Assembly (NCBI GenBank): GCA_001179505.1
Contig: CDMY01000231.1
Location: forward strand, 1-64,000
DNA length: 64,000 nt
Direction: 5' to 3'
Source of the DNA: Vitrella brassicaformis CCMP3155
Taxonomy: Eukaryota > Protista > Chromerida
A program made the translations under genes and the position numbers. The notes beneath the pieces are model-generated. The model worked only from the letters and a program-made list of their open reading frames with translations. It had not been told where the DNA came from and ran no database searches. Below are positions 17,905 through 61,479 of this stretch, piece by piece. Positions within the stretch are counted from its first letter, which is position 1, and the number at the start of each line of letters is the position of its first letter.

Positions 17905-20100
17905 CTAGCCCTGAGTGCGTCCCGGTCGCGTGCCGCAGCAGTGGTCTTCTTGACCACCTTGGCGCGCATCATGTTTGTCCTGCTTGAGGTGGTCGATGCT
18001 CTTGTGGAACTGAATGCCCTCCAACTTGTCCACATACAGACAGGTGCGGGCCGTCACAAACAACGCCTGCAGGACACACACACGATGTATGCATGACTGT
18101 GCATGTGCGTGCGTAATGTCCCCGCACCTTCCAGATGGGCGTCGGGTCGTATCTGTACAGCGGCCCCAGCAGCTTCTTGAGCGCCACCGTCGCCTCTTTG
18201 GCGTGATAAAAGGGAATCCTACAAACAATGCACAGACAGAGAGAGGGACACACAGCCTCACTCACTCCACAGACGGTCATGTCGTTTGTTTTCCACTAGC
18301 TAGCTTTAGGTGTGTCTGTGTATACATCATACTTAGGATCGAGGTGGTGCATGACGTGTGTGCTGCCGATGTAGTGGTGCAGCTCATCCACCACCCAGGG
18401 GTAGGGACGGTCGATGGTCGACAGAGCGCCCCGCAGCCACGTGAAGGCATCGTCGCCATAGTGCGGGCAATCTGCACTCAAGTCAACACGTACGTACAGA
18501 GGGAGGGAACCGATAGAGAGAGACATCCACAGTCCTGGCTGCCTGTCTGCCTGTTCGTCTCTCATACCAGGGTGTGTGTGTGTGAGCCACGTGATGAGCA
18601 CCAGCCATGCGTTGACGACGAGGTACGGACCCACATACCACTGAAGCGGCAGCCACCTGCACACACACACACACACACATCCACCCACTGATTGCCATCA
18701 GTCAGTCCATCGACCAGCCCGTCCCTCCCTCCCTCCCTCCCTCCCTCACCATGACGTCATGGCCCCCCAGATGATGTTTGCGGCGATGACGACCCCGCAC
18801 CCCAGCCCCGATGCCGTCACCTTCCATCTGAAGTGCGGCGGGAACCTCTCGTTGTCGGGGCCGTAAAAATGGCTGACCGGACCATTGGCCGCGTCGAGGG
18901 GCTCGCCCCTCCAGTTGACGCGGCCGCCCCCGACGGTCGACGTCAGGTACATGGGGTAGCCCATGATGAAATACAACACGATCTCTACGATGGCGAACGC
19001 ATCCTCACCAATCAAGTCACTGAGATGAGAGAGGAATGAATGGGCAACCGTATGTATCATGAGAATGGGAATGAGCTTGTGTGAGCGTGTTCGTTTGTTT
19101 GTTTGTTTGTTTGTTGTCTTACGCCATTTTGGTGAGTTGGAATGTGTTGTTTGGCGAGTGGACCTCATCCTTGAGCTCCGGTGTGTACGACTCGCCGCGC
19201 GTGATGTGGTTGGTGAACTTGTGGTGCTTGGCGTGTGTGTACTGCCCGCTGAAGTAGGGCACCAGCAGACAGCTGTGCACTAGGAACCCCACAGTGTCGT
19301 TGATGGCCGTCGACTCAGAGAACGCTCCGTGACCACACTCGTGCGCAATGCTCCACGGACCGAACGCTATCGTGCCCTGCATCACATCAACCAGCGTCAT
19401 CAGCAAGCATCATGGTGCGGTTACCTGTATGGTAGGTGGTAAGTGTGTGTGCCTGGCTCACTCACTTGCACGATGGCGTATGTGATCCACGCGAGTGTCC
19501 TCAACACCCAGCTGTGGCCGCACACCAGCGGGACGAGGTGGTACGTCAGCCATGCAGTCACCGCCAGGAAGAGCACATCGCGACTCAGGTACAACTGCAC
19601 GACGGCACGGCCCGGCACGCACACCAGATAGATGTGTCTGTCGGTGGTGGTGGTGGCTGGGCGCTATGCTCATTGACTGACCAGTCCAGTGACGGCAGAT
19701 CTCTGGCGGCAGTGGGGGGGGATGGCGTCAAAGATCTCCTTCACCGTAGGCACCTGGGAACACACACACGGACATGTCATGTGCACTGCACTGACTGATG
19801 ACTGACGCCCTCCCCCTACTCTGCTCGCCTCCCTCTGCATATATCGCACCCACCTTTGGCAGGTCCTCTTTGGCGTCCACCAAGTCAAGCGGGGAGGCCA
19901 CAGCGTCCACGTAGCTGCTATCGCTCCTGGGTGCACAGACCACACACCAAAGAGGGGAGGGGACGTTTCTGCTACACTGCTGCAGAACCAACGAGCCACT
20001 GGTGCTCACCTGGCAGACCGAGTGATGACCCTTTTATCCTCGGCGCTCGACAGGGGCTGTCTGCACATGTGTGTGTTTGCCTGGATGGACGTTCTGTCGG
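17905..20100 (-). CDS. Delta12/omega3-type (FAD2/FAD3-like) membrane fatty acid desaturase, about 9-10 exons
   Basis: LPK|VPTVKEIFDAIPPHC; His boxes WSIAHECGH, YTHAKHH and LHHYIGSTHVMHH; also WLTHTHP|DCPHYG, TWLRGALSTIDRPY and IPFYHAKEAT. Exon phases can be joined without stops. Start codon not fixed. Confidence 0.9.
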
Positions 20101-20739
20101 TTGAACGCTGCGAGGGCGGGTTGCGCCTGAGAGCCGTTGCGAGTTGGTGCCCGGTGGCGGTTGAGATGGATGCGACGAGGGTTTGGGACCTAACAAACCC
20201 TAGTAGGATCCTTCGGCAAAGCCTAGGTGCTCGCGTCTGGCGTGGAGGCTGTCTCCGTGTGTAGTAGCCAGACCAAGCTGTCCCTGTGTAGTAGCGGCCG
20301 CTAACCGTCCATCTATCTATCCTCTACTTCGCATTCGCATTCGCATGGCTCTAGGGTGCGAATAACTTTCTCCACCCATCATTCCGCAACACTGGCGCCT
20401 GGAGGCTCTCCCCGTCGTCACGAACCTGACACCCATACGGTAATACACACATGACGGACCCAACCACCACCAAGGCAGGCACGTGAGGCTGAGGCAGCAA
20501 GCCAGATCTGAGGTATGAAGCGCCGGTGGTGACCGAGATGGACCATCTCGTGGTGGACACGTGGTGGCGGAGGCCGGAAGGCACCGCGATTCCGGCGTGG
20601 TGGTAATGAAGGATCTGGCTTGGTCTGGGCGGGAGGCGTCGTGCTGGGGTAGTTCTCTGGCTGAGGTGGTCGGTCAGCGTTGGAGGAGGTAGTTCCTCCT
20701 TCGATAGCTGTGTACAGGTCGTGTTTGTGTGGTGTGCAG

Positions 20740-22930
20740 GCTAGTGGCGATAAGAGAGGGGAGGGGGCGCTGGAGGGCCACGAGAGGCCAAGCACGGAGT
20801 GCTTTCTCTGTCAGATCTATGGTCCCTGCCACGTTAGTGAGGCGTTCTGGAGGAGATCTTGGTCATGGTGCGTGGAGCACATGTCGGGATGGTGGTTCTG
20901 AGCATCATGGCGATTGGCGCACATGATGGCGACGGAGATCTGGCGTTTCATGGTGCCGTGGGCACATGTTCGCCGTGTGCATTCCTGACCCGACTGCGTC
21001 GTGGGCGAGTGGGTTTTCTCTCTCTTCCCTTATCATTTGCTGATGGCTAGATTGGTCATCGATGGTGGTGCGCGTGTTGCGACTACTGACAGATGGGATA
21101 CATGGTGTGGACGGCACAGACTTGTGTCCATATACGTGTGTATCTGAAGGCTCATCCCTTCATTGATTGGTCCTTGCATGGATCCATGCACCGTGTGTCA
21201 TCATGCACACAACACCCACACGGACACGCACAGGCCGATGGCCAGGCTGCGCAGCCCTGGCTGGCCACACGAGCGCATGCGTTCCTCAGCTGACCCCGCT
21301 GGGGCTCGAACACACCTCCCAACATGCACCGAAATGACCGACAAAAAACGGCTTAGGGTTTATGGTATAGGGCAGCCACTCATTGATACACTCGAGTAAC
21401 CAATATCGATACACTCCACTCCACCCATCCATCCATCCAAACCAACAATCAATCAGAGAGGCCCCACCCTTCAGTCTGTCTGTTTCCTGTCTGTCCCCAA
21501 ACCCATGACCATGGGGAAGGAGTAGCGAGGAAAAGGGAGCCTAGAGATGCAAAGATTATGAGGCTGACAAACAGAGAGGGGCATAGAAAGAGGAGAAAAG
21601 AGATGGAACAGCGGCTGTGAGACGTCGGGAGAGCGAAGAATGACAGAAGGGCACCGAGAAAGAAAGGCGGCTAGACAAGCGGACAGCAAGAGGGACTCAG
21701 CCAGACGCACGATAGAAACAGCACGACAAAATTAGCGACATAAACAAAAACCGCGTTAAAAGAAACAACCGCAGATAGAGACAATGCAGCAACGACAATC
21801 CCATGACAAAAAGTCGCATGCACACATTCGCAGACAGGTCAAAACAGCGCAAGATGAAAGGAAGTGCCCATTCAGCAGAGAGTAGGTCAGTCAGAGGGTG
21901 TCTTTCGGTTGATGCGCATGGCCGGCCCGCCCGCATAGATCAGATAGATGGGAGCCATGCAGGCAGGCAGGTTCAATTACTTACCTGGCTCTGCTCGCCT
22001 CGCTAGCCAGAAGAGATCAACATACAGCCTCGCTCAATCGATCGATTGCTTAAACGTTCAGGACACACACAGACAGACAGCGATGTAGAGAGACAGAGAG
22101 ACGGACAGACGGACAAACGGACACAGATTAACAAAGACAATAAACACGTTCAGGACACACCCAGACAGACAGACAGACAGACAAACGGACAGACAGACAG
22201 CGATATAGAGAGAGAGAGAGAGACACAAATGAACAAAAACAAGATACCTGCTCCCCCCACCCTCCCACACCCTCATCTAATGGCACGAACGGGTGCACAG
22301 GCCGAAAGAGGCCGGCAACAGCGAATGGAGCGATCAATAGACTCGTACGCACAGCCGGGCAGACAGACAGGGAGACAGACAGACAGACTAGATACACTAT
22401 CCCTCTTCATCTGCCCGGCCGACTCACACCGCAATACATCCATACATGCCCCCCCCTCCATCTCTCCCTCTCAGCCCAGCCCAGTATGCACACCACGAAC
22501 AGGCCGGGCAGACAGGCAGACAGATTAGATACACTCGAACCAAAAACGGCATAGGGGTGCAGTCAAGTCAAGAGCCTGCCAGCCCGCCAACGTGTGCGAT
22601 TCCCCACCTCTCCGTCTTTCACGCACAGACATCCATCCATCCATCCCAGATATTCGTCATGTGTGTCCATCCGATCATTCAGACATGCGAAATCACCCAT
22701 GTGGTTTGTGTGTACACGTGAGTGGGGGAAGGGGAGAGTGCAGCAGTTGGGGGTCATCGGGGAGAGAGAGACAGCCGCCAACCATTGACAGTAGACGTGT
22801 GCAATCAAGCCATTTCAAAGTGGGAAAAAGCGAAAAAAGCATAGTGCGTGCATCCATTCGCCATCCATCCATCCATCCGTCGACCGACCGACTAGCCATC
22901 CATCCATCCACACACAACTAGAGGCCAAAA
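20740..22930. repeat. Direct repeat block, copy B
   Basis: Same-orientation homologue of 14900-17720 with indels. Confidence 0.85.
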
Positions 22931-24724: not shown

Positions 24725-27700
24725 TCACTCCTCGTCGCACTCGTCCACCCGCATCAGGATCGACAACTGCCTGCTCAACTCAATGGCCCGCTCGAGTGCT
24801 CGGGGGGACACCTTTGCTCGGCCTTGCTCGCCAGACGCACACGAGATGAAGAGGTCGTGTGCACTGGGCCACTCGGCGCGCCTCAGATCCTCCTGCAGAT
24901 GGGCCGTGGAGATCATCAGGTGGTCGCGGGGCTCGTGTGGGGGGCACCAGTGAGAGGTAAAGCGCTGCAGACAGACAGAAAGAGGGATGTGTGTGGAGGG
25001 AACTTCGTGGTTTGGTTTGTGTGTGTGCTTCGGTGGCGTGCGTACGTGTACGAGTGGCATGAGTGGGTAGAGAGGTGATGCCGCGCCCCTCTTCTTGATG
25101 GTGGCGAGGAAATGGTCCACCGACACCGACTTCAGCGGCACACCCAAGTCGCCGAGCCAATGCTCGCGCTCAGAACTGATCGTCCACAAACAAACAGGTA
25201 GGTACACACAAACAACGAATGCACTCCGCCCTCCCTCCGTGTTGTCTCTCTCTAGTGTGTGCTGTGCTGTGTCCGTACTTGGTGATGAGCTCTGGGTTGG
25301 CGAGATGGTAGACCCAATGGCGACGCTTCTCGGTCAAACACAGCCGGACCTGCACAGACACGACATGGACACAAGAACAACGAATGCATCGCGTCCACTC
25401 ACTCCCTCACTCGTCTAGGCACACTCTCTCCTCTCACCATACCATCATGGCAGCGACGACATCCACGGGGGTCGCCAGAGGCGCTTTCACGACGGGCGGC
25501 ATCTCCCCCTCCTCGAGCATTGCCATCATCAGCGCCCCGCCCACGTGCCTCTCGTCCACGTAGCCCGTCATCAGGCTCGTCATGCCGCTCGGCACTCGGT
25601 AGATGGTGCACGGCAGGCCCCTCGCCCGCGCCTTCTTGAGCACCTGCTCCGTCGACCAGTTGGTCCACGGGAGGCCGAATTGCTCGGGTGGGCAGACCTC
25701 GCGCAGGCGCTTGGTGTCGAGGGTGGTGGCCTCGCGGAGCTCCTTGCCCTGGCCAAGGACGTACTCGGGGAAGAGGGTGAGGGACGACACAAAGTGGAGG
25801 GGCTTGAGCTTGCTGGTGGTGCACAGCCGCACGATCTCCTTCATCGCGAAGGTGTTCTCGCGCAGGCGGTCGTAGCTCTGCATGAACGACTGGCCGTTGG
25901 CGAAGCCCGTGTGGAAGACCAGGTCGATCCGCTCGCACAGCTCGGCAAAGAAGTGCTCGGCCAGGTGGTTGGGCTTGAGGCCGAGATGCCGCCGCGTCAC
26001 GTGGCCGGGCACGATCATCAGCCGGCTCTGGTACTCGTCCTTCCAGATGCCCGCTTCCTGGCACGCCTCACGCACCTGCCGCAGACCCTCCTCGTCGCTG
26101 TTGGTCTGCACCAGGCAATGCACCGTCAGCCGCTCCTTGGCCTGCAGCAGCGCCACGGTGAGGAACCGGCCCACTGCTGACGTCGCGTCCGTCACGAGCA
26201 CGTGTCTGCTCTTGCGGGGTTGTGGGTGGGGGGCAGGGAGGGAGGCGACGTCGAACTTGAAGCTCTTGGCCACCTTGTTGACGTCCGTCTCGGGGTCCCT
26301 CTTCCTAGTGGTGCCGTCGTCCGTCGCGTTCGAGCCGCTGCTCTCGGTGTTGTTGGTGGCGCCGTCCCTGTGCCCCGAGAAGGGGGCGATGGGCTCCATG
26401 ACGCCCTCCTGCTCACGTTTGGCCACCAGCTGCCCAGCCAAAGCGTCCAGCGAGGGGTTGTCGAACATAGACGAGGGCGGCATGTCGATGCCCGTCATCC
26501 GCCGCACGTGCTCGCTGAACTCGGTCATGCCGATCGAGTCGAGGCCCAGATCGAGCAGTCTGCCGGAGGGCGACGGCCGCTCCTCCCCACCCACCACCGA
26601 GTGGGCGACGGACGCCAGGGAGTCGGCCAGGGCGGTCTTGCCCGTGTCGTTGGTGGATGAGGGTCGGAACGGGTCGGTGGGCGATGTGGGCTGCACGGAT
26701 GAGGCACGAGTGTCGGTGGAGGAGCGGAAGCTGGAGGGGGTGAGGGTGGAGGGGGTGAGGGTGGAGAGGGACCGTGTCGAGGCGTCGGTGAGGACCGACG
26801 GGCAGGGCGCGTTGCGGGGCGTGGACTTGGCGGTCTTGACGACGGTGTCTGCTGGTGCTGCTGCCGTGCAGAGGTCTTCGCACCACATGACGCCGCCCTT
26901 GCCGTTGGCCCGACTTCTTTGGAGCATCTGCTTGGCCTTGCTCCGCTGCAACTTGCCCGAGGTGGTCTTGGGCAGGACGCGCGGCTTGAGCAGCCAGATC
27001 TGCTGCACGGGCAGACCCACCTTCATGCTCGCCGCACGGGCCACCTCCTCTGCGATCGTCCGCAGCACCGCGTCCTTGTCGCCATGGCGATCCGTCGTGC
27101 ACGCCAGCATCGACACAAACCGACCAAACCCGCCAAAGTGCCGCCTGCTCGCCCTCTTGCTGCTCCCCTTGGCCCCACCCGCCATGGCCAGCGCCCTGAC
27201 CCCCTCCGGCCGCAGCTCACATGCGATGCCCATGCCCTCTCCCTGCTCGCTCTCCACGGGGAAGGCCGCGCAGCAGCCGGGTCGCACGACGTCACACTTG
27301 GCCTCGATGGCCTCCTCGATGTCCTGAGGGATGTACTTGCGCCCCCTGACGATGATCATGTCCTTGGCGCGGCCGGCGATGAAGAGCTCGCCCTTGTAGA
27401 GGAAGCCGGTGTCGCCGGTCCGCAGGAAGGGCCCTTGCTGCTCGGGTGCGTTGGTGGTGCCCGAGAGGGTGGCCCGGAACGTCTGATGGGTCTGCTCCGC
27501 CATGCCGAAGTAGCCCTTGGCCGTAGAGGGAGACGACAGCCACACCTCACCCACCTGGCCCTCGGGAAGCAGGTGGTGGGTGGACGAATCCACTATCGCA
27601 ACTGATGGATGGATGGATGAAGGAAAAAAGAGAGAGAGCACATGAGGGCAACTCAGTGGGCTTGTCTGTGTGTGTGTGTGGGCATACCAGTAGTGTCGGT

Positions 27701-29807
27701 GGCAGGGAGTCTGCAGCCGATGATGATCTTTCGCTCGGACGTGTCTGTCCAGCTGGGGCGGAATCCATACCACTCCTCCTCAATCCGAACGTTGCCCTGA
27801 TGGACAGACACATGCACATACATACACGGTAAATGAATGCAAATCAGACGCGATGCGCACACGTGTCCGTCCGTCGATGCGATGCGTGCATGCATCCTAC
27901 GTTGGTTTCTATCTCTAGAGCGTTGATCGAGAGCACCAGCGGCTCTGCGTCGAGGGATGGCCGGAAGCCGGTGACACACAGGGTGTTCTCGGCCAACCCA
28001 AATGCAGGCAAGAAGGCGCTGTGGCGCACGCCAACCTCCCGAAACGTCTGCACACACACATATATGCACATAGATAGACATGACTGACACATGAGATAGT
28101 GGCCTGGCCATCCATCGGTGGCTCACTCACATCCATGAAGTTCTTGATGGACGAGTATCTGATGGGCTCTGCTCCGCACAGCCAGGACGCCTTGCTGAGG
28201 TCGAGGGACTTCCTAATGTCCTCGGGCGTCTTGCGGCTGACCAGGTCGTAGGCGAAGTTGGGTGCGGCTGTGACCTCGCACTCCCACTTGGTTAGGCCCT
28301 GCAGCCACGACCAGGGCCGCCGCACGAAATCCAGCGGGGACATCATGATCATCTCGCTGCCGAAGAACAACGTGCCACCAACAAGACCAATCAGACCTGA
28401 TGATAAGAAAGGTAAGAAAGGGGAGAGGGAGAGAGAGGGAGAGAGAGAGAGATGAATTGTCGGTTGTGTGTGCTTCATTCAGTTCGTCCATCGTCTCACT
28501 CACTCACTGCATCCATGCATGCCTACCCAGGTCATGATAGACCGGCAGCCAGCTAAACGTGCGTACGTTGTGCCCCAGCACACTCCGTGACTGACTGTGC
28601 CTGTTGTACCAAAATGTCACGAACTCGCGCAACGGGCGATCAAACAGCGGGACGAAGGCCTCCTCGCTGCCGTTGCCCTCCCCTCCGCTGTCCTTCCTGA
28701 GGTCGTGCTTGGTGCGGTGATCGTCTCGCGGGTCCATCCCGAAGGTGGCCGTGCACAGGTGCACGTTGCTAAAAAAGTCACAACACAAGGACATAGACAG
28801 TGCATTCACAGTGAATGCATCCATCCGTCACGGCACGCATCCATCGTGTGCACAGCCTGTTCTCTTACTGGAGGAGGTTTCCGTGTGTGACCGAGACGCC
28901 CTTGGGGTGGTTGGTGGACCCCGACGTGAACTGCAGGAAGGCCACCTGGCTGTGGGGGATGTCGGAGGGGAGAGGGGGGAGGGACGGGCCGTGGCTGTTC
29001 TTGGAGGCCCTGTCGATGAGCTCCTGCGAGCTGGACCACCGCAGCTTGCGCCATTCCTTGCGCACCTCGTCGGTCAGCTCGTTCTCCTTGGCGGCCGGCG
29101 GCTGCGTGTGCGAGTGGCCGTTGGATGCGAGGGGTGCCTGGAGATGGCTGGCGATGGACGAGGAGGGGCGCTGGCTGTGGAGGCTCAGCTTGCAGTTGAG
29201 GCCGTGAAGAATGCGCTGGTAGAAGTTGTTGGTCAGGCACGCCTGCGCCTTGACCGTCGAAGCGATCCGCGTGAAACGGGGAAGGTCCGTGCTCAACTGA
29301 AAGAAAGAACAATGACACACAGACAGACAGACAGACAGACAGACATGAACACACAAACGTGCGGCCACCACCCACCCGAGTGGTCGTATGTATGTGTCCC
29401 TCCCGTGGTGGTTGCCTAGACTGACTGACCTTGGAAGGGTCAGGAGGGTAGACAGGCACGGCGACCACCCCACTGTACAGGCACGCGAAGAAGGCCACGA
29501 CGAAGTCGATGCCCGGGGGGTAGCACAGCAGCACCGACGCAGGCTTGCCATCCTCACCCCGATCCAGCATCTGCAGCAGCTGCCGCCCCAGCGCCTCGGC
29601 CCGCCGATGCAGCTCCTGATAGCTGAGGGCCGACTCCACCGATCCGTCCACCTTGATGAAGCGGACGGCATTGACGGACGGCTGCACACGGGCCCAGTAG
29701 GAGATGATCCGCCGCATTGCGGGACCCTCCTGGGGCACTTCCGTCGGCGCGCCGTCACCACATGGCCACCAGCACTCGTTGACGTAGAAGTCGTAGAGGT
29801 TGGCCAT
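24725..29807 (-). CDS. Fatty acyl-AMP ligase (FAAL)-ACP-thioester reductase-like tridomain protein; R domain degenerate
   Basis: FAAL motifs LLCYPPGIDFVVAFFACLYSGVVAVPVYPP, AFLQFTSGSTNHPKGV, SWLPVYHDLG|LIG, APNFAY, CGAEPI, FGLAENTL, LRTGDTGFL, GRAKDMIIVRGRK, LPKTTSGKLQR. ACP LLDLGLDSIGM. The R-like region has VLVTDATSAVG and GLPWTNW in place of TGxTGFLG and GYxxSKW. Confidence 0.9.
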
Positions 29808-48660: not shown

Positions 48661-48803
48661 CGACGCAAGCAGCCTAGCCGCAGACATCGTGACAGGCGAC
48701 TGGTGAGCTGATAACACACACGCGGGCATTGGCAAAAAGGACTTGCTGGGCAAAGCACATGAATGCTAGACACAGTGAGCTCAGAAGAATCTCTGTACTG
48801 TCC

Positions 48804-51800
48804 CTAGAACAAACATTCACGCCCGTCACCTGGGCGCTGCCCCATCAAATTGCGGGGCTCCACAGCGCCCAGTGAGTCGAAGTGAGTGTCCTGGGGCGCC
48901 GGGCGGTTTCTCGAGAGACAAAACAAGCCATGGAGACAGGCGGAAGACGGAAGACATCCGGTTCGCCGCCTGACGCAGACGTCGGAGTCATAGTACCTCT
49001 CGAGGGCCGTCCTGACCTGCTCCTCGGTCAGATGCACTTCCTCCAGCGCATAGCTGCGCTTCAGCTTGTCCTTGTGTTCCTTGTTCTCGTTGATGAATGC
49101 CCACATGCTGTCTCTGGCCCGCTTGTTCATCGGTATCTTGAAGTGCCTGTAGATCTTCTTAACCATCTCCATGGGACCGTTGATCAGGTCGTCGTAGTGC
49201 ACGTCCAAAAATTGCTTCTGGAGGTGAGAATTCTTCGCGCGAAAATCCATGGAATGGTCGACCATGTTGGCTATCACCTCAAGCTCCTTCTGGCCCACCG
49301 CGTCGAGGTCCACCTCCTCAATCAGCTCCTTCCGCACCGCGCCTACGAGGCTGCACCATGAGGCGACAACATCCTTCGGACTTCTGTACACACACACATC
49401 ACACACACACACGCGACAGTGAGCGTGTCTGTGTGCAATCGGGGTGGTTGGCGCTGACCTGTGTACGTGGACGACGAGCGCGTTAGGGTATGTCTCGAAC
49501 AGTGCATCGAGTGCGAATAGCTGGAAGGGCATGTTGAGGAGCCACCTGTTTCCGGCCCGCTGCCACTGCAGGTGCTGTAGAAACCGCTTGTGAAAGGCGT
49601 ATCCGCGGTTCATCTCTTTGCAGTCGTCCTTGAAGAGCCACTCCTTGTATGCGGGTGTGTCGAACTCCACGCACATACTGTAGGATCTAAAGCAGTGCTC
49701 GAAGATCATGTAGTCCTCGTCTGGCCAGTCGGCCCTCTGCGCGTGGATGCGCATCCAGTCGTCGCTCATGCTCCGAACGAAATCCAGCGCCTCTTGCGCA
49801 GGGGCCAGCCGGGGATCCTACAGGCGTACACACACACACACACACGCGCGCGCGCGCGTCACCAGTGCTCGTGTGCTCGTGCGGCATGCGGCCCGGTGCT
49901 GACACGTACCTGGTCCCAGTCCCATGGGGCGTCGTTGGGTACGTTGTGCGGTCTGTATGATCCGTCCTCGCCGTATGGACAGTACATCTCACTGTACATG
50001 GGGGCCCTCATAGCAGGGTCTTGTGCGATCAGCCGCTGCAGTAAGGTGGCGCCCATCCGATCGAGACCCACGATAATCAGCGGCTGTCTGATCTGCTGCC
50101 GCTCTATCTCGGGGTTGAGGCGCGCCACCTCCTTCATGAACAGGAGGTTCTTGAACATCTGCCGGGACGTGCGGAACATCGCCAATTCCCCGAGGAAGGA
50201 CAGCTTCACCTCCTGATTGGCGCTTTTGGCCAGCAGCCGTGCTGGCTCCAGGTAGAAGTCCTCACCTTCCGCCTCGGTCGCGAAGTCCCTGAGACCGTCG
50301 GTGTGCTTCCGCGCCCACTCGAGTGCGTGGTCAGCATCGATGATGACGGAGTTGCCCTTGGGAGCGAAGAAGCGAAACTCGATTTGGTACTGGAAGGAGG
50401 CCCGGAAGGTGTCCTTGACGGGTGGCCATGCCATGTGTGGGAGCTCGTCGAAGATGTTATGGGTGCGGATGGGGAACGGCTCGGTCCGCTCGTCGCAGTC
50501 GAACCAGTAGGACCGCCAGTACTGCATGAGGAGCACGAACTTGAAGACGGGCGACTCGGGACCGCGTTTCTTGACGGCGTCGAGGAAGGTGTCGATCTTG
50601 ACGCCATAGTACTTGATGCCCAGCTCGTCTGCCCACGCCTCAAGCTGACCCCTGCACACGGACATAGGATACGTCAAATCGATGCATTCGATTGAGCCCT
50701 GTTGCCTTACTGTTTGACGACGGTGGTGTCGATGAGGTGGTACAGCCAGTGCTTCCGCCGCTCAAGGAACGAAGCCTCCACCTATACGACGAACGAATGA
50801 CCGGACGAATGAAGCCCCCACACAAGCTTTGCGACCTACCAGCATCTCAGCAATGGTGTCCACCGGTGTGAAAGGCGCCGTAGACGCGCCGACGGGGAAC
50901 ATGCCCTCCTCGATGGAGCTGACAGTCAGCGCCGTGGCGAAGTCGTCCTTGTTGGTGTACCCTGTCCGCCAGCCGACGAACGTGCTGGGGAGTCGGTACA
51001 CGCACACGGGCAGGCCCATGTCGCGAGCCTTGCGCAGCACTTGCTCGGCGGCCCACTTGCTCCAGGGGTAGCCCATGCGGAGAGGGGGGAAGAACTTCTG
51101 CATCTCCTTGGGGTCGGGGGAGGAGTCCTCGGTGATGAGCCGGTCGTCGAACTCCTGGCTGAAGCAGGCAACGAAGGCCGGGAAGATGCCCAGGGTGGAG
51201 ACGTGGTGGAGCGACTTGAGGCGGTAGGTGGTGCACAACCGCAAGACGCCCTTGAGGGCGAGTGTGTTGGTTGCACGGAGACGAGCGTAGTTGCTCAGGA
51301 GGTTGACATTGCCGCCAGTGTGGTGGACCTGAATGAAGAAACCACACACAGAGAGTACATGTCAAGCCTTCGATCACTGCTTCCCCGTGCTGCGCATGTG
51401 CAAGTCACCATGTCGATGGTTCGGCAGAGTTCCACGAATTTGTCTTCGCCGACGCCGAGGTCCTCCTTGGTGAAGTCTCCGGGTAGCGCCTCGATGCGGC
51501 TGGCGTACTCCTCCTTCCACACCTTGGCCTCATTGCACGCGTCGCGGATGCGCTGCATGGCGTGCTTCTCGTCGTTGGCCCGCACCAGGCACGTGACCTT
51601 CAGGTTCTCACTCCCCGGCCGGTCCAGCAGGCATACCACTTGCAGGCGGCCGACAAACCCCGTTACGCCGGTGAGCAGCACGTTCTTAACTTGCTTGGGG
51701 TGCCGCATGGGCAACAGAGTGTTGACGTCGAACTGCAGCCACTCTGTGAGGTCCTTGATGTCGTCCATCGGGTCGACCGTCTTCTCTCGGGGCTTGCCAC

Positions 51801-54800
51801 CGCCCACGGCTCCTCGGATGGCCTCGTCGTAGTCGGTCGCCGCGCCGTCCTGTGCCGCTGCCGGGGCGCCGTTGAGTGGCGATAGCTTGTCGGAGCTGGA
51901 TACGTTGACGAGGGACGAGCGCATCTTGTCCCATGAGTCGTGGAGGCGCCTGAAGTCCTCCTCGTCCCGCACCTGGCAGACGTCGAGTGCGAGTCGGAGG
52001 TCGGTCTCCTGCGCCATGGCCTCGACGGATGGGTACTTAGCCTCGAAGACGTCGAGGTACTGGAGGTAGCGCTTGGAGCCGCTGAAGGCGCTCTTGAGCC
52101 ACCCCTCGACCGTCATGTCGTGGTTGTCGACCTCCGTGGATGAGGGCGCCTTGCCGCTGCCCTGCTCGTCCTTGGCCGCGTCGCCCGCCGCCGCCAGCCG
52201 CTCCCTGTCCACACCTGACACCTCCTCCACCTTGTCGACATCCCCCTTCTTGCCGATCTTGGTCGGCCGCCCGTGGGCAGTGTCGAGGATGAAGTCGGCA
52301 ATCACTTCGATGGTCGGGTTCTCGAACACCAGTGTCTGAGGCAGCTTGACGCCCGTCAAGTCCGCAACCGAGTTGCGGAACTCCACAGCCCCCAGTGAGT
52401 CGAGACCAAGGTCCATGAGTGGTGCGTCGATCGGGGGCTTCTCAGCAGACCCCGACACCTGCTGCGCCAGCGAGCTCAGCAGACCCGACAGGTCCAGCTT
52501 GCTGATGGCCTTGAGGTCGATCTTGCCACCGCCACTCTCGGCCGACGCTGCCATGGGGATCTCTGAGAAGAAAGCGGGCATGTCGCCATACCGCCGCAGG
52601 AAGGTGGCCCACTTGAGGCCCTGGCAGCCGAACACTGACGGCCCGCGCATACCAGGCGCCAGAGACTGCTGCCGCATGACGTCCCCCATGACACGAAGAA
52701 CAAGATCGTTGGTGATGCCGCGCATTCCCGCCTTGTCGAGGTGCTGCTTGAGTTCCACCGCCATGCCCTGCTGGATCCACGGGCCCCACTGAATGCTCTG
52801 CGCCGCGAGCTTCTTGGATCGCCGGTACTCGGTGAGGGCGTCCAGGCATGAGTTGGCCGCCGAGTAGTTGGCCTGACCAAAGTTGCCGACTAGTGAGGCG
52901 ACGGAAGAGAACATCATGAAGTGGTCGAGAGGGGTCTCCTCGTCGAGCGACAGCTCGTGGAGGTACCAGGCACCCATCACCTGCACACACACACGAGGCA
53001 GAAGCGATGGATGAGGAACACTTCTCGTGAGGGTCTCCTGAGTGTTTGACTGGCTCGCTAGCTCGCTGGCTTAAAAGTGAAGTGACTGTCTGACTGAGTG
53101 AGAGAGCGACGGAATTGGTGAGTGCCTGACTGCCTGCCTGCCTGCCTGCCTTAATGGCGCACGCAAAAAAGGATGGGGTGTGTGAGTAACTGGCGATGCG
53201 AGTGAGTAAGAGGAAGAGAGAGGGCAGCAGTCACGGCCTGGCTGGCTGCCTCACAACCCAAGTGATTGACTGACTGACTGACTGAATCAGTCAATGAATG
53301 AGTCAGTGGGAGTAGAAGCAAGCTTGGGGGTCTCACTCACCTTTGGCAAGTAGACCTTGTCCACCTTGNNNNNNNNNNNNNNNNNNNNNNNNNNNNNNNN
53401 NNNNNNNNNNNNNNNNNNNNNNNNNNNNNNNNNNNNNNNNNNNNNNNNNNNNNNNNNNNNNNNNNNNNNNNNNNNNNNNNNNNNNNNNNNNNNNNNNNNN
53501 NNNNNNNNNNNNNNNNNNNNNNNNNNNNNNNNNNNNNNNNNNNNNNNNNNNNNNNNNNNNNNNNNNNNNNNNNNNNNNNNNNNNNNNNNNNNNNNNNNNN
53601 NNNNNNNNNNNNNNNNNNNNNNNNNNNNNNNNNNNNNNNNNNNNNNNNNNNNNNNNNNNNNNNNNNNNCCCGCACCTAGCAGACGTCGAGTGCGAGTCGG
53701 AGGTCGCTCTCCCGCGCCATGGCCTCGACGGATGGGTACTTGGCCTCGAAGACGTCGAGGTACTGAAGGTAGCGCCTGGAGCCGCTGAAGGCGCTCTTGA
53801 GCCACTCCTCGACCGTCATGTCGTGGTAGTCGACCTCCGTGGATGAGGGCGCCTTGCCGCTGCCCTGCTCGTCCTTGGCCGCGTCGCCCGCCGCCGCCAG
53901 TCGCTCCCTGTCCACACCTGACACCTCTTCCACCTTGTCGACATCCCCCTTCTTGCCGATCTTGGTCGGCCGCCCGTGGGCAGTGTCGAGGATGAAGTCG
54001 GCAATCACTTCGATTGTCGGGTTCTCGAACACCAGTGTCTGCGGCACCCTGACGCCCGTCACCTCCGCAATCGAGTTGCGGAACTCCACGGCCCCCAGTG
54101 AGTCGAGACCAAGGTCCATGAGTGGTGCGTCGATCGGGGGCTTCTCAGCAGACCCCGACACCTGCTGCGCCAGCGAGCTCAGCAGACCCGACAGGTCCAG
54201 CTTGCTGATGGCCTTGAGGTCGACCTTGCCACCGCCACTCTCGGCCGACGCTGCCATGGGGATCTCTGAGAAGAAGGCGGGCATGTCGCCATACCGCCGC
54301 AGGAAGATGGCCCACTTGAGGCCCTGGCAGCCGACCACTGACGGCCCGCGCATACCAGGCGCCAGAGACTGCTGCCGCATGACGTCCCCCATGACACGAA
54401 GACCGAGTTCGTTGGTGATGCCGCGGATGCCGACCTTGTCGAGATGCTGCTTGAGCTCGGCTGCCATTCCCTGCTCGATCCACGGTCCCCACTGGATGCT
54501 CTGACACGGCAGCCCCTGCGACTTGCGGTAGAGGGCGAGGGCGTCCAGACACGAGTTGGCCGCAGAGTAGTTGGTCTGGCCGAAGTTGCCGAGCAGGGAG
54601 GCGACGGACGAGAACATCATGAAGTGGTCGAGAGGGATCCTCTTGCCGAGGGACAGCTCATGGATGTTCCATGCACCCATCACCTGCACACACGATAGAG
54701 GAAAGGGATGAGTCAACAACCTCGTTGGGGAACGATTCATGTTCGGGTTCCCTCTCACCTTTGGCAAGTAGACCTTCTCCACCTTGTCTTTGGTCTGGTT

Positions 54801-57800
54801 GTTGAGGGCAGCGTCGTCAAGCCTCTCAGCTGCGTGGAAGACTCCACGGACTGGGTTCTTGGGCAGCTTCTTCTTGAGGTCAGCGAACAGATTCTCGCAC
54901 TCGTCCTTCTTGGACACATTCACGGCCATGCAGTATATGGTCGCCTTGGAGCGGCCATGAGGCTCGGGCGCCGTCAGCTTCGTCCACAGATCGGAAGCAG
55001 CAACGGCATCAGTCGGCTTTCCGCGCCTGGATAGCAGAGCGACATTTTTTGCTCCCTCCTCCACCAGCCAGTCTGCGACAAGCAGTCCGAGTCCGCCGAG
55101 TCCTCCGGTGATGACATAGCATCCGTCAGTCTGGCGGCCGGCCGGTGTCGCCTCGTCGCGCTGTGTGTCGTCTGTGTGGGGCGGTGCGATGGCTGAGGGT
55201 ATTTGTATGATGACCTTGCCGATGTGCTGCGCTCTCTGCATAAACCTGAAGGCCGCGATGCCGCCGGTAACGTTGTCTGCGGTGCTCATGTCGAATGTGT
55301 GGAGGGGGATGGGTTTGATCTTGCCGCTGTCGACCAGGCCTCGGACACGATCGAGCATGGCGCCGAACCAGTTGGGATCTTGCTCCATCATGTGATCGAC
55401 GGTGATGGCCTCGTACATGGCCAAGTCGGGCCGCCTGGCAAGGACCTCCTCTTTGCTCCAGATGCCGCGCTTGCCGAGCTCCATGAAGCGGCCCTTGAGC
55501 GCCATGGCGTCGAGCGAGAAGGGAATGAAGTCCTCGATGAGGCAGTTGAGGACGACGTCGATCTTGCTGTTGGCCTTGTGCATGTCGGCCTGGAACTGGC
55601 TGGCGTCGCGCGAGCTCGTGACCAAGTGCACGCCCTGCTGTCGTAGGAAGTCCTGTTTGTGCTGGCTGCCCGCCGAGCCATAGACATTGGCCCCGACGGC
55701 CTTGCAGTACTGGATGGCCGCAAGCCCGACGCCGCCCGATGCCGCGTGGACGAGAACGTTGTCTCCCTTGGTGACCTTGGCGAGCTCTCGGAATGCGACC
55801 TCGACCGTCACAAAGACGACCGGCAGGGCGGCCGCCTCTTCGAAGGTCATCGATGCGGGCTTGATGGCCATCAGGTTGGCGTCAGTCGTCACGTACGTCC
55901 GCAGGCAGCCCGGCGCCACGCCGTAGACGTCATCCCCAACACACAAGTGACTCACGCCCTCCCCCACAGCCACTACCGTACCCGAGCAGTCGCCGCCCGG
56001 CGGGCCGGGGTCGCCAGGATACAGACCCATCACGTTCAACACGTCGCGGAAATTCAAACCGATCGCACGAACACGGACCTCGATGCAGCCCACAGGGGGC
56101 GGGATGCGGGCGGCCTGGGCCAGCGGTCTTAGCTCGAGGTCGGTGATGGCTCCTCGCTGTGGCATGTAGAGCTCCACGGCTCCCCTCAGGTCAACCTTGG
56201 CCTTCTGCATCCTCGAGTAGAAGCATGCTGGCTGGCTTGGGGTCTTTTCGGTCGGGCGTGTATTGCGAAGGGCCACCTCTGCCTCATAGCCCACGGTGTC
56301 CCCTTGCGCGTTGAGCAGGATGGCCATCTGTTCTATGAAGCCGTCGACGGTGTCGGGCGAGGTGGGGTCGATGTCGACGCAGCCCATCTTGATGAGAGTG
56401 CCGATGTTGTTCTCCAGCTCCAGTCGGGCCGTCTTGGCGAAGCCCCACAGGCCGGCGTGGCGCGGTATCTCTGGCAGCGTTTCGTCGGGGAGCGCGAGCT
56501 GCGTGCCGCGAGTGACGAGCCAGATGGCAGGGAGTTCGACGTTAGTGCCCAGCTTGAGGATGACCTGGGCCATCCTGAGGGCCTCGCTGACCACCACAAC
56601 CGGGTCGGACCGCTTCTCGAGGCTGCCCATGTGGAGGACGCAGTCCCACTTGTTCTTGTCGGCAAGGATCTTCTCCATGTCCATGGCGTCAGGTGTCTCG
56701 CCGTACGCGATGAGCCGCGACTCTCTGCTCTTCCCGCACTCCACCAGTCTGCTGTACAGCACCTTCTTCCAGGCAGCCGGCACGCCAAACAAAAGCCACC
56801 TTGGTTCAGCGGCAGCAGCCTCCTCCTCAGCAGCAAGCTCCTTGCTTGGCTCGGCCTGTTTCCACGTGACCTCCCAGAGGATGTCCCGGGGTATGTCTGC
56901 AGGCGGCGTGGTGTCCATCTGCCGCAGACTAACGTTCTTGAGGTAGGCGGCGATGCGGCCCCTGCTGTCCTGAATGACCACATCGATGGTCGCAGCACGG
57001 TCCTCGCGCTTGAGCAGGCGGACGTGACTCCACAGCTCGCTCGACGGGGCGATGCGAGCCAGTGAGACCCTCTCCGCCCCCACGGGCACCAGAGCTGCCT
57101 TGGTCTTCCTCTTGCCGGACTGGTCGGCCGCGAGTATGGCGGCGGCTGACTGCAGGGCGCCGTCGAGGATGGCGGGGTGCAGGCGGAAGCCGCCCTCGAA
57201 TGGCTTGATGGGCGGGTCCAACTTGAGCAGGGCCAGCGCCTGGTCATCCGACACGAACAGCTCTGTCACCGTCTGGAACCGCGGGCCGTACGCCAAACCG
57301 ATCTCCTTGAGCTGCGTGTAGAACTCTGACAGCGGGGCGGTCTTGTTGCACCGGTGCTTGAGGGTGGTGAGGTCCTCCACCAGGTCACTCTCGCTGTCGT
57401 CCACGTGGGCGACCTTGACCAGACGGCCGGTGGCGTGCGACACGAAGTCCTCCTCGCCGGGGGCTTGTGTAGTGATCTCGACGGCCATGGGGGGCATGGC
57501 GGCGCTGCTGTCAGTCGTTGGCTGCTTCTCGACGGTGATGCGGATGGTGGGCATCTTGGGGTCGGGCTGCTTGTCATCGGGCTTGGGCAGCATGAGCGGC
57601 CGCTCGAACGACACATCCTCCAGATGCACAAGCTCTGCAGCCGATATCTTGGCCCCCCTCTCCACCTGCGCTGCTGCCAGACCGGCGCTCGCCAGGATAT
57701 CAATGAACCCTGCGCCAGGCATCAGAGGCACGCCTGCAAACGCATCAAGATATACACAAAGCAAATGCTTCAACCAGCAAGCCGCATGTGTCTGGTCTCA

Positions 57801-60484
57801 CCAAGCACGACGTGGTCCTCGATGAGCGTCTTGAGGTCTTGTCGCAGAGTGCCCTCGAAGGTGAGGCCCCTGGGTCTCGTGAGCCGCTGGCCGAGTGCCG
57901 GATGGGCGGTCTCGACCCACGGGAAGCTCTGGTGGTTCCACTGGTGAGTGCCCTTGACCTTGGCGAGGCAGGTCTCGATCGTCAGGCTGACACCGTCCTG
58001 GTCGTCCTTGTCGGGATCCATGGGACCCAGCCAATGCAGATCCATCTTCTCGGCAACCTCCTGCACGCACTGCTTGCCCATGCCGATGAGCGTCGGCCGG
58101 GGGCCGACCTCCACTATCACCCGTGCTCCCGCCTCGACCATCGCTCGCATGCCGTCCATGAAGCGAACCGGCAGCGTGATGTGGTTGGCCCAGTACTCGC
58201 CCCTCACGACCTCGTCGCCAGCCATATTGCCGCTGACGTTGGACACGAGGGGGATCTTGGCCGTCTTGAGGTTGACTGTCGACAGCACCTGCTGGAAGGG
58301 AGCCACAGTCTCACCCATGAGAGGGGAGTGGAAGGCGTGCGAAACAGTGAGGAGCTTGTAGCGGCCCCCCACGTTGAGGGCCTTCATCACGGCCTCGACC
58401 TCGCTCCGCTTGCCCGACACCACCACACTCTTGGGGCCGTTGACGGCNNNNNNNNNNNNNNNNNNNNNNNNNNNNNNNNNNNNNNNNNNNNNNNNNNNNN
58501 NNNNNNNNNNNNNNNNNNNNNNNNNNNNNNNNNNNNNNNNNNNNNNNNNNNNNNNNNNNNNNNNNNNNNNNNNNNNNNNNNNNNNNNNNNNNNNNNNNNN
58601 NNNNNNNNNNNNNNNNNNNNNNNNNNNNNNNNNNNNNNNNNNNNNNNNNNNNNNNNNNNNNNNNNNNNNNNNNNNNNNNNNNNNNNNNNNNNNNNNNNNN
58701 NNNNNNNNNNNNNNNNNNNNNNNNNNNNNNNNNNNNNNNNNNNNNNNAGCAAATGCTTCAACCAGCAAGCCGCATGTGTCTGGTCTCACCAAGCACGACG
58801 TGGTCCTCGATGAGCGTCTTGAGGTCTTGTCGCAGAGTGCCCTCGAAGGTGAGGCCCCTGGGTCTCGTGAGCCGCTGGCCGAGTGCCGGATGGGCGGTCT
58901 CGACCCACGGGAAGCTCTGGTGGTTCCACTGGTGAGTGCCCTTGACCTTGGCGAGGCAGGTCTCGATCGTCAGGCTGACACCGTCCTGGTCGTCCTTGGC
59001 GGGATCCATGGGACCCAGCCAATGCAGATCCATCTTCTCGGCAACCTCCTGCACGCACTGCTTGCCCATGCCGATGAGCGTCGGCCGGGGGCCGACCTCC
59101 ACTATCACCCGTGCTCCCGCCTCGACCATCGCTCGCATGCCGTCCATGAAGCGAACCGGCAGCGTGATGTGGTTGGCCCAGTACTCGCCCCTCACGACCT
59201 CGTCGCCAGCCATATTGCCGCTGACGTTGGACACGAGGGGGATCTTGGCCGTCTTGAGGTTGACTGTCGACAGCACCTGCTGGAAGGGAGCCACAGTCTC
59301 ACCCATGAGAGGGGAGTGGAAGGCGTGCGAAACAGTGAGGAGCTTGTAGCGGCCCCCCACGTTGAGGGCCTTCATCACGGCCTCGACCTCGCTCCGCTTG
59401 CCCGACACCACCACACTCTTGGGGCCGTTGACGGCAGCCACAGAGACCGTCTTGGTCTGACCCTCGCCCACACTTGCGATGCCCTTGAGCACCTCCTCCT
59501 CGCTCAGCCGACACGCGGCCATGACGCCATCATTCTGGGGTGCGTCGTTCATGATTCGTGCTCGTTCTGCGATGAGCCTGAGTCCGTCCTCGAGGCTCAT
59601 GACGCCTGCGATGGTGGCGGCCACGTACTCGCCCAGGCTGTGGCCCATGACCACATCGGGCGTCACACCACGGCTCCGCAGCAGCTGAGCCAACGAGTAC
59701 TCGACCGCAAAGATCAGCGGCTGGGAGAACCGAGTCTGGTCGATCATCTCCTGCATTTTGATCTTCTCCTTGTCGTTCTTGGGGTAGAGGATGCCCGTGA
59801 GCGGAACGGGCAGCAGCGGATCCAGGATGGTCGCGCACTCGTCGATGCACTCCCGGAACACCTTCTCGTTGTCGTAGAGCTTGCGGCCCATGTCGACGTA
59901 CTGTGAGCCCTGCCCAGTGAACATGAACCCGATTTTGTTCTGCAACGCCACCGAGGCCTTGTCCTTGTTGAGCATCTCATCGATCTGCGCCGCACTGAGC
60001 GCCTTGGCCTCCACCAGGATGTGGGCATTGGCGCCACCGAATCCGAATGAGCTCACGTCGCCGACCATGCGGTCCTTGCCTGGCAGGCCGGACACCAGCG
60101 GCACTGGCTCGGTAGGGAAGACCACTGGGAAGGTGTCGTTCATCGATATGTCGGGGTTCAGCTGAGTGAAGTGGCGAGTCCATATGGCACGAATGTGTGT
60201 TGCAGTGTCGTTTGTGTGTGTACCGAGTGGGCTTTTATGACGAGGGCGGCCTTGCTTTCTTCCTCTTCTTCCTCCTTGGCCTTCTCCGCGAGCTGCCTCA
60301 TGGCGGAGTCGAAGCTGCGCAGCACAATGATGGCAGGCAGGCGGCGTTGGGCTTGGTGACGCCGGACGGCTGCCTGCACGTGAATAGCCGCCCTCTGTTG
60401 CGCTTCTCGAAGTGTGCGGCGTCGGGCGTGAGACGGGACGCCTTGTGGCCATTGTGGGAGGTGCTGGGGCGTGGAGGGCGTGGC
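48804..60484 (-). CDS. Type I reducing polyketide/fatty acid synthase: (KS C-terminal tail)-AT-DH-ER-KR-ACP-linker-[gap]-KR-ACP-linker-R-sulfotransferase-like
   Basis: KS tail HFTQLNP..VSSFGFGGANAHIL; AT FTGQGSQY, GHSLGEY, HAFHS; DH DHVVLG|VPLMPG, LHPAILDGALQ; ER HAASGGVGLAA; KR ITGGLGGLG, LDD, GQTNYSAAN; ACP DLGLDSLGAVE (twice); R VLLTGVTGFVG, GYPWSKW; ST-like IIVGLDRMGATLLQRL, RWLLNMP, HR|SPKDVVASWCSL. Two N gaps interrupt it, so it may be one gene or two. Confidence 0.9.
48900..50330 (-). other. Sulfotransferase-like domain (bacterial Stf/Sulfotransfer_3 type) at the PKS C-terminus
   Basis: QPLIIVGLDRMGATLLQRLIAQDP, FHKRFLQHLQWQR, ALDALFETYPNALVVHVHR, FLDVHYDDLINGPMEMVKKIYRHF. Confidence 0.8.
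50400..51700 (-). other. Terminal thioester reductase (R, extended SDR) domain with intact motifs
   Basis: VLLTGVTGFVG, GDFTKEDLG, HVST, GYPWSKWAAEQVL, VYRLP. Confidence 0.9.
53369..53668. other. Assembly gap (300 N) inside the PKS
   Basis: N run between two KR-ACP-linker copies. Confidence 0.99.
58448..58747. other. Assembly gap (300 N) inside the PKS, flanked by a ~690-bp near-identical duplication
   Basis: 57760-58447 repeats 58748-59435 with about one substitution seen. Confidence 0.97.
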
Positions 60485-60849
60485 CTGTAGCCAGCACAGC
60501 AGAGCACCAGCACATGGGTGAGTGGTTTGGCCAGATCATGGATTCATCATGGTTACCGAAGGGGGGGAGCAACATATCCCGCAAAAGGATCCTCTGAAGG
60601 GCATGATGGCGTGATCCCGTCAGTCAGCGAAGCCAGTCAACGAGGTGACGTTGATCGAATCTTAGGGATGAGATGTCGCGAAACAATTGCGATATCGAGG
60701 CGTTTCGAATTCGCAGATGTCGTCTTCTGTCTCTGTTCCACCTCATCCGTCCATCTTTTCCTCTCTCTCGCCCAGCCTGTGCTCATATCCCTCTGTTTCT
60801 CGGTCCCTCCCTTCCGCAGGCCTCCATCCACTCGCGCTCGTCCCTCGCG

Positions 60850-61479
60850 ATGCGGTTCCTTCTCTGCCTTGTCGGTGCCCTCCTGCTGGTCGGCAGTGTG
60901 CACGCAGAGGAACTCATCGACTACGGCAATTGGTGTGGCGTTCGCAACACACAGGACGATGAGAACTACCGCTGTATTGACGGCGTGGACTGCGCTTGTC
61001 GTCAGCACGACCTCTGCATAGAACGCCACCTCAAGGATGGGTACACATTAGAGCTACACAAATGCAGCTGGTACGTACGTAAGGCGAGAGGAAGCAAGCC
61101 GCGCACTTCTCATGTTTTCGCGTCGCGTGTTTGTTTCAGTGACAAGGACTTCCTCAAAGCCCTCCCTGGCGCATCGTGTTCGAAACCGAAGTGCCCCGTA
61201 TACAAAGAGGCTGCCATTGAGCTGTTCCGCCGCAAGCCGTGTATAGAATACAAGCGCCCCTGTATCATGGGACACTGTACCGAGATTCCCGTTCCGGGTG
61301 TGGGCGGGACAGCAGCTACGGGGCCTTCGACAGAATCGGTAGTCGACGATGCTAAGGACGCTGTCGATGCCGCTAGGGACGCCGTCAAAGACGTCGCCGA
61401 TGTCGCCAACGACGCCGCCAAGCGTGGTCGAGATGCCATCAGGAACGTCGCCCCTCGGGTGCCAAAAAAACCCTGGTAG
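60850..61479 (+). CDS. Secreted phospholipase A2-like protein (two exons, intron 61071-61139) with an Asp/Ala/Lys-rich repetitive tail
   Basis: Signal peptide MRFLLCLVGALLLVGSVHA; Ca-loop YGNWCG; catalytic DGVDCACRQHDLC; spliced CSC|DKDFLKAL; tail DDAKDAVDAARDAVKDVADVANDAAKRGRDA. Confidence 0.85.
   Translation: MRFLLCLVGALLLVGSVHAEELIDYGNWCGVRNTQDDENYRCIDGVDCACRQHDLCIERHLKDGYTLELHKCSWYVRKARGSKPRTSHVFASRVCFSDKDFLKALPGASCSKPKCPVYKEAAIELFRRKPCIEYKRPCIMGHCTEIPVPGVGGTAATGPSTESVVDDAKDAVDAARDAVKDVADVANDAAKRGRDAIRNVAPRVPKKPW

Follow-up and report, generated by a model that had tools for sequence, protein, structure and literature searches.

A probable recurrent association of fatty acyl-AMP ligase and polyketide synthase genes with NCR1-type transporter genes in the chromerid Vitrella brassicaformis

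Results

We analyzed a 64,000-nucleotide stretch of the Vitrella brassicaformis CCMP3155 genome (GenBank assembly GCA_001179505.1, contig CDMY01000231.1, positions 1 to 64,000), hereafter the window, in which three elements lie near one another: a gene for a fatty acyl-AMP ligase (FAAL) fused to an acyl carrier protein (ACP), a gene for a Niemann-Pick C1-related (NCR1) transporter, and the 3' part or parts of a polyketide or fatty acid synthase (PKS/FAS) ending in a thioester reductase (R) and a sulfotransferase (ST) (Table 1). We put the chances at about even that these three elements are the core of a real neighborhood. Because linkage of FAAL or PKS genes with transporter genes of this type recurs at an old paralogous locus and at a recent copy, the association is probably a real one in Vitrella, so far as sequence comparison can indicate. 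It also appears to be undescribed, and no paper mentioning NCR1 together with polyketide synthase was found in the library searched.

A first-pass annotation of the same DNA, made from the letters alone, had proposed a single split pathway of five genes, namely a desaturase, the FAAL-ACP gene with a reductase-like domain (FAAL-ACP-R*), an exporter of the resistance-nodulation-division (RND) superfamily, a reducing PKS ending in R-ST, and a phospholipase A2 (PLA2). All five gene types are present near the positions claimed. The accompanying statement that almost every recognizable gene acts on acyl chains is true of the genes recognized by Pfam, but not of two annotated models of 90 and 577 aa, nor of the approximately 10 kb of repeats that the span also holds. 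Annotated models for 22361-46914 were taken from CDMY01000231.1 (GCA_001179505.1), which is letter-identical to the window over this stretch.

Recurrence of the Linkage

The transporter gene of the window (P0241) and the FAAL-ACP-R* gene are divergently transcribed, standing head-to-head with 2.5 kb between them, while the tail of the PKS lies about 12 kb downstream of the transporter gene, placing the FAAL loader 19 kb from the PKS pieces. A similar divergent arrangement is found on contig CDMY01000244.1, where the transporter P0246, ~40% identical to that of the window, is encoded 645 bp head-to-head from an AMP-binding gene. Beyond the latter are a gene with the order AMP-binding-ACP-ketosynthase (KS)-acyltransferase (AT) (1204 aa) and then a 3268-aa PKS; an ELO elongase gene occurs 3.7 kb downstream of the transporter. 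The two loci share no DNA similarity and their proteins are only 24–45% identical, so the P0246 locus is not a recent duplicate. The divergent FAAL/RND arrangement is shared by two independent transporter lineages, P0241 and P0246.

The recent copy is on contig CDMY01000799.1 (L011), which encodes P0402, about 88–90% identical to the window transporter. Here a PKS tail, in which KR-ACP-KS (KR, ketoreductase) is separated by a gap from KR-ACP-R, lies 4.5 kb upstream of the transporter gene, in the opposite orientation relative to it when compared with the window; this tail, too, ends in a reductase-sulfotransferase. Repeats of one family are found at both loci. In the window, a tandem repeat of ~691 bp follows the 3' end of the PKS and has inverted relatives at 37017-38332, directly after the RND gene. 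Members of this family in L011 occupy 5446-7535, between the PKS tail and the RND gene. The shared repeat family and the opposite relative orientation of the genes on CDMY01000799.1 suggest a repeat-mediated inversion. FAAL or PKS genes therefore accompany an RND gene on CDMY01000244.1 and CDMY01000799.1 as well as in the window; no desaturase or PLA2 homologue was found at any related locus fetched, which does not fit the single split pathway proposed at first.

Table 1. Positions of the features of the window, with those of the three-part core listed before the remaining genes, repeats and gaps
Feature	Position	Strand	Remarks
FAAL-ACP-R* gene	24725-29807	-	annotated model 1389 aa; Pfam AMP-binding, PP-binding, NAD_binding_4
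NCR1-like (Niemann-Pick C1-related, Patched/SSD) RND-type transporter gene	32361-36914	+	1068 aa, CEL95564.1; at least 11 exons mapped
PKS: KS tail (last ~45 residues, 60206-60080), KS-AT linker and malonyl-type AT	58761-60206	-	GHSLG, HAFH; Pfam Acyl_transf_1, KAsynt_C_assoc
PKS: copy A, 1373-aa intronless ORF, DH-ER-KR-ACP-linker	53679-57797	-	Pfam PS-DH, ADH_zinc_N, KR, PP-binding
PKS: copy B, end of KR exon, intron 52984-~53258, then C-terminal half of KR, ACP, pre-R linker	51966-53368	-
PKS: thioester reductase domain, motifs intact	50765-51675	-	Pfam NAD_binding_4 on two ORFs; VLLTGVTGFVG, GYPWSKW
PKS: sulfotransferase domain (Sulfotransfer_3 / Stf type), C-terminal end of PKS	48807-50761	-	Pfam E 4e-22
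688-bp sequence on each side of gap 58448-58747	57760-59435	.	copies 99.855% identical
Assembly gap between two terminal-type KR-ACP-linker copies	53369-53668	.
Tandem repeat of ~691 bp, about 2.7 units	46654-48547	.	98% identity (self-blastn); just downstream of PKS 3' end
Assembly gap, FAAL-RND intergenic	31514-31813	.	poly-G on both sides; flanks do not match one another
Annotated 90-aa model	30686-31200	+
FAD2-like (omega/delta-12 type) desaturase, at least 6 exon-like pieces	17972-20005	-	HECGH, HAKHH, HVMHH in order
Annotated 577-aa gene, no Pfam family	39972-42549	-	3' part overlaps repeat
PLA2-like gene, secreted Cys-rich 186-aa protein	60706-62202 (CDS 60850-61479)	+	spliced 1280-nt RNA contig in X1, X2

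The Transporter and Its Family

A homologue search with the Patched-type open reading frame (ORF) of the window returned CEL95564.1 at 99% identity. The top match of this protein in the Protein Data Bank (PDB) is NCR1 (8v0g), with 296 bits, compared to only ~140 for NPC1L1 and PTCH1. Pfam Patched and Sterol-sensing score 96 bits each, and both transmembrane motifs of the GxxxD type, considered proton-relay-type, are kept (GIGVDD and GVGFSVDY). Every PDB or Pfam match is with a protein of the NCR1, NPC1, Patched or Dispatched kind and none with MmpL (HAE2), so that the transporter is not a member of the latter family. The RND exporter of the first-pass annotation is thus of the Patched/NPC1 type, as stated there, but its matches assign it to the NCR1 family, also carried by apicomplexans, and not to a cluster-specific type.

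Vitrella encodes six NCR1-like paralogues. In a quick tree, with SH-aLRT support only, these form a single Vitrella-only clade that is sister to a clade containing TgNCR1; P0246 is a long, separate branch within the Vitrella clade. One of the paralogues, P0243 (1542 aa; locus L006, CDMY01000802.1), has in addition a START lipid-transfer domain at its C-terminus, with a weak Pfam match (E 4e-4). NCR1 is an antimalarial drug target.

The FAAL-ACP-R* Gene

Exons of this gene were placed by tblastn at 29723-24728 and encode, in order, a fatty acyl-AMP ligase-like adenylation domain, a carrier protein (LGLDSIG) and a reductase-like domain. Its closest named relatives are bacterial fatty acyl-AMP ligases, and it was catalogued in 2024 as the nonribosomal peptide synthetase (NRPS)-like biosynthetic gene cluster VitBra_CDMY01000231.1_1, of 5083 bp. 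The ligase and the carrier are as first annotated, but the reductase-like domain reads VLVTDATSAVG and GLPWTNW in place of the TGxTGFLG and YSQ(S/T)K of its homologues. The same substitutions occur in the 88% identical Vitrella paralogue P0121; the bacterial homologues P0122 and P0128 are canonical. By this reading of the motifs, the gene does not encode a carboxylic acid reductase-like FAAL-ACP-R with a competent reductase, and the domain is predicted to be catalytically dead, with both the NADPH loop and the Tyr/Lys pair (now TDATSAVG and LPWTNW) lost.

The PKS Pieces and Their Gaps

The PKS portion of the window comprises a KS tail with AT, a long ORF with dehydratase (DH), enoyl reductase (ER), KR and ACP domains (copy A), a second KR-ACP stretch (copy B), and the R and ST domains. 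P0001 and P0002, like P0121, are Vitrella paralogues that match window genes at ~85% identity; an origin of the window in another species, to which such values could have pointed, was rejected on the exact match to the Vitrella contig. Copy A contains the motifs GGVG, GGLGGLG, YSAAN and LGLDSL and is 83% identical to P0001; the HxxxGxxxxP motif of the DH is interrupted by an intron. Measured against a type I PKS/FAS module, the AT (HAFH), DH, ER, KR and ACP are present with their motifs, but a KS with Cys-His-His is missing beyond the final ~45 residues, so the fully reducing malonyl-type module that had been annotated is not there in full. The reductive-release ending did hold up. The R domain retains its GxxGxxG loop and YxxxK motif (TGVTGFVG, YPWSKW) and is directly followed by the ST (Sulfotransfer_3), an ending of the Swf or coccidian type. 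The ST contains at least one in-frame intron, and its PAPS loop, GLDRMGAT, is partly diverged from the GLVRTGTT of 2zq5. In the PDB this domain has no relatives other than 2zq5 and 2z6v, which we take to be mycobacterial Stf sulfotransferases.

Two assembly gaps interrupt the PKS. The gap at 58448-58747 reflects either two overlapping contigs that were left unmerged or a series of repeated modules that was collapsed, because its flanks are duplicates of each other and the ungapped paralogue L002 has a single copy at this site, with AT, a short intron and DH uninterrupted. When the Ns and one 688-bp copy are dropped, the reading across the gap becomes continuous. L002 (GCA_029980125.1, JARPMZ010003111.1) is a 6670-bp ungapped contig with one complete module unit, KR-ACP-KS-AT-DH-ER-KR, and is 93–98% identical to Vitrella contig CDMY01000508.1. 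Its ends match the neighboring window sites 53258-53220 and 53121-52670, as a tandemly repeated module predicts.

The second gap separates copies A and B. The sequence to its right (53669-54693) and the stretch 51966-52990 are 92.9% identical (self-blastn), and both flanking copies contain the C-terminal half of KR and an ACP before entering the same pre-reductase linker. Copy B has a KR intron of ~270 bp (52984-53258), as do L001, L002 and L011, and is 91–100% identical to the paralogues L001 and L002 and 96% identical to L011; copy A reads through the corresponding position (54693-54753). The two sides of this gap may be two tandem genes or different paralogues joined by scaffolding. Whole modules hidden in the gap were also considered, by analogy with L011, whose first KR-ACP leads on to a KS, but such a reading has no simple fit here, since both window copies run into the pre-reductase linker.

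The window PKS is drawn from a many-copy module family and may consist of two tandem or chimeric 3' fragments. Lacking a KS and stitched across two unreliable gaps, it is not a usable single module as assembled, and at this locus the PKS is incomplete and is probably mis-assembled or fragmentary. More generally, PKS gene models of the Vitrella assembly are unreliable, because modules have been collapsed and gaps are flanked by duplicates. Chromerids carry many multi-modular FAS-I/PKS genes, with about 40 KS-bearing models in Vitrella; one of these, Vbra_424 (1469 aa), has the length of P0002, and the sizes of Vbra_12045, Vbra_12047 and Vbra_12050 match the second locus, on CDMY01000244.1 (PMC7464705).

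Transcription and Copy Number

Contigs from two RNA-like runs (X1 and X2) and two DNA-like runs (X3 and X4) were compared over 58748-64000; as these data are contigs, a region that they leave uncovered is no proof of anything. The RNA-like behavior of X1 and X2 shows in that they contain a GT..AG joint that skips 69 nt in the PLA2-like gene and is not in X3 or X4. The KR-ACP-R-ST part of the PKS seems to be transcribed, since X1 contains 0.54 of the sampled words of 48800-53368. The summed DNA depth of the AT segment is 524 and 304 in the DNA runs, compared to ~15 and 23 for its flanks, and reaches up to 20–35 times the single-copy level; this raised depth, together with contigs that are shattered there, indicates many copies of the segment with at least 95% identity. 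Two further RNA contigs mark other expressed genes at the right end of the window. One joins 62698-62942 to 63082-63519; the other joins 63563-63699 to 63808-63933 across a CT..AC intron (GT..AG on the minus strand) and extends past 63933.

Other Genes and Repeats of the Window

The desaturase is of the FAD2 type; its three histidine boxes follow in the proper order, and the piece 19122-19409 matches Pfam FA_desaturase (39.9 bits; cut-off 29.7), although no desaturase ORF of at least 100 aa matched Pfam. Direct duplicates at 15663-17720 and 21327-22930 (92–98% identity) flank this gene, and the corresponding stretch is single in L003, as if the desaturase segment had been inserted or the block duplicated around it. 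L003, a FAAL paralogue locus (85% identical), keeps the order of the window between 26887 and 21373, going down in position, and then continues into a DAO/GCV_T gene; retention of the desaturase there was accordingly rejected.

The PLA2-like protein has a signal peptide, 13 Cys residues and the motifs YGNWCG and CACRQHDLC. With CACRQHDLC and the signal peptide it is a candidate secreted PLA2, but the Pfam Phospholip_A2_1 score of 23.6 bits is below the cut-off of 32.1. The 69-nt intron (61071-61139) is in frame and stop-free, so that the unspliced ORF seems intact and adds 23 false residues; a similar in-frame intron trap occurs in the ST ORF around 49380-49450. We regard this gene and the desaturase gene as most likely bystanders.

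The ORFs of the annotated 577-aa gene are negative in Pfam, and its Atlas matches are at chance level only. An 897-bp inverted repeat (95% identity; 12529-13414 and 39626-40518) overlaps the 3' part of this gene. Pfam returned nothing for the 60 ORFs of at least 100 aa outside the named genes.

Alternative Explanations

Several observations weigh against a three-part neighborhood, and some of them would be explained by chance proximity combined with segmental duplication, in which case the neighbors are uncoupled and the transporter serves general membrane lipid homeostasis like apicomplexan NCR1. We consider this account possible but doubtful. It builds on the dozens of PKS/FAAL genes and the six NCR1-like genes that Vitrella has, many of which were copied as blocks of gene size with repeats at their flanks. 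Some chance adjacency is expected, because Vitrella has at least ~25 catalogued PKS/NRPS-like loci. Repeats flank the gene blocks, and at L010 the RND block alone (32236-36966) has been copied, at 87% identity (P0401), into a neighborhood of unrelated genes. P0401, P0391 and P0243, three of the six paralogues, have no FAAL or PKS neighbor in the loci fetched. The same is true of the NCR1 homologues of Toxoplasma and Eimeria necatrix, so the check for synteny in coccidia that had been suggested with the five-gene pathway gave a negative answer; from Chromera, the searches made brought up no orthologue. Proximity by chance does not readily account for the deeply diverged P0241 and P0246 both standing head-to-head with a FAAL-initiated gene. 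With about 25 catalogued loci, the share of the genome no more than 12 kb away from a PKS/FAAL locus is ~1.5%, a rough estimate and not a whole-genome one; on this figure, two of four independent lineages would fall near such a locus with a chance of ~1 in 1000. The five-gene pathway, in which the split genes make and export a lipid of the long-chain fatty alcohol type, perhaps one used in a cyst wall, is in our view very improbable. All five genes do occur within 44 kb, and at the second locus, too, the transporter has a gene for fatty acid modification (ELO) beside it, but neither the desaturase nor the PLA2-like gene is part of the recurrent linkage. Moreover, the desaturase sits between direct duplicates of a stretch that is single in L003, the PLA2-like product is small, secreted and Cys-rich, its gene is covered by RNA contigs but the PKS part next to it is not, and to act on lipids is a loose category chosen post hoc.

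A separate question is whether the PKS of the window makes any product of its own. It could be decaying or chimeric, either a 5'-truncated gene (KS tail-AT-DH-ER-KR-ACP) with the end of another gene (KR-ACP-R-ST) behind it or a scaffold joining different paralogues, and we give this explanation somewhat less than an even chance. Both PKS gaps are unreliable, and the pieces may not be continuous across them. A motif search and a relaxed tblastn detected no ketosynthase in the 64-kb window beyond the last ~45 residues, and this end of KS homology, at 60173-60206, is real in the window copy, because a DNA contig of single-copy depth spans 60116-60365 without any difference. Another DNA contig departs from the window at 60173 and continues into ...AAPNL, the KS continuation of paralogue P0002, as expected if other copies run into a KS. 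The two KR-ACP-linker copies are both of the terminal type and differ by 7% and in the presence of an intron. The AT region is many-copy DNA, and no X1 or X2 contig lies over 58748-60705 (KS tail and AT), although the neighboring PLA2-like gene is covered. The coverage hole carries little weight, however, for the reason given above; the ORFs are long and uninterrupted (up to 1373 aa) with intact motifs, and the R-ST stretch appears in transcriptome-like runs. The three-part core, in which the PKS is represented by its 3' part or parts, remains our preferred explanation.

Proposed Pathway and Its Significance

Gene identities, motifs and the recurrence of linkage are read directly from the sequence; from these we infer the coupling of the genes and the following biochemical steps. 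The ligase would activate a fatty acid and load it onto its own carrier, and the PKS would elongate the chain and reduce it fully. Release by the reductase would give an alcohol, which the sulfotransferase may convert into an alkyl sulfate. The transporter would then move this amphiphile into or across a membrane.

As a tentative extension of this model, the members of the expanded NCR1-type clade of Vitrella may have become dedicated partners to PKS/FAS enzymes that are primed by a FAAL, exporting or inserting the released lipids, possibly long-chain alkyl sulfates; this would represent a eukaryotic analogue of the mycobacterial FadD-Pks-MmpL systems, kept as head-to-head gene pairs. To our knowledge, few functional gene clusters of alveolates include a transporter of their own. 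If this hypothesis is correct, the tie to FAAL-PKS synthases would give NCR1-like proteins a concrete substrate class, released long-chain alcohols or alkyl sulfates. It would also offer a testable origin for the role of NCR1 in parasites, in a free-living relative of the Apicomplexa, and a handle on the reductase-sulfotransferase release step common to coccidian synthases.

Comparison with Known Systems

The mycobacterial loci for sulfolipid-1 and phthiocerol dimycocerosate (PDIM) bring FadD (FAAL), Pks and MmpL genes together. The window resembles them in having a fatty acyl-AMP ligase, a reducing PKS and an RND transporter near one another, and a sulfated lipid is a plausible product. However, its transporter is of the NPC1/Patched/NCR1 type and not an MmpL, and the genes are separate, intron-bearing units 2.5–12 kb apart that form no operon. 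No common ancestry of the arrangement is implied.

The transporter is closest, among proteins in the structural database, to apicomplexan NCR1 (PfNCR1, 8v0g; TgNCR1), with the sterol-sensing domain (SSD) and the GxxxDD / GxxxD motifs conserved. It differs in that Vitrella has six paralogues, half of them with FAAL or PKS genes as neighbors; the genes of Toxoplasma and Eimeria have no such neighbors.

SwfB, from sponge symbionts, was described in 2013 as having an R-ST ending, with an alkyl sulfate as the proposed product, and two coccidian FAS end likewise (PMC3908369). In the Swf cluster (SwfA, KS-AT-DH-ER-KR-ACP; SwfB, R-ST) and in the coccidian FAS, as in the window, a fully reducing module is followed by R and a contiguous ST (PMC3908369). 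The window departs from this in the fusion of R-ST to its PKS, in the absence of the KS from the assembled locus, and in its neighboring FAAL and RND genes, in place of which Swf has a radical SAM partner.

Synthases of the Cryptosporidium/Toxoplasma type likewise use a FAAL-like loader with an ACP, here at the N-terminus, KS-AT-DH-ER-KR-ACP modules and reductive release by a C-terminal reductase, and apicomplexan thioester reductase activity has been assayed (TgPKS2). At the second Vitrella locus, the loader is fused to KS-AT. The window differs in that its loader is a separate gene with a reductase-like domain predicted to be dead, 19 kb from the PKS, with the transporter gene between the two.

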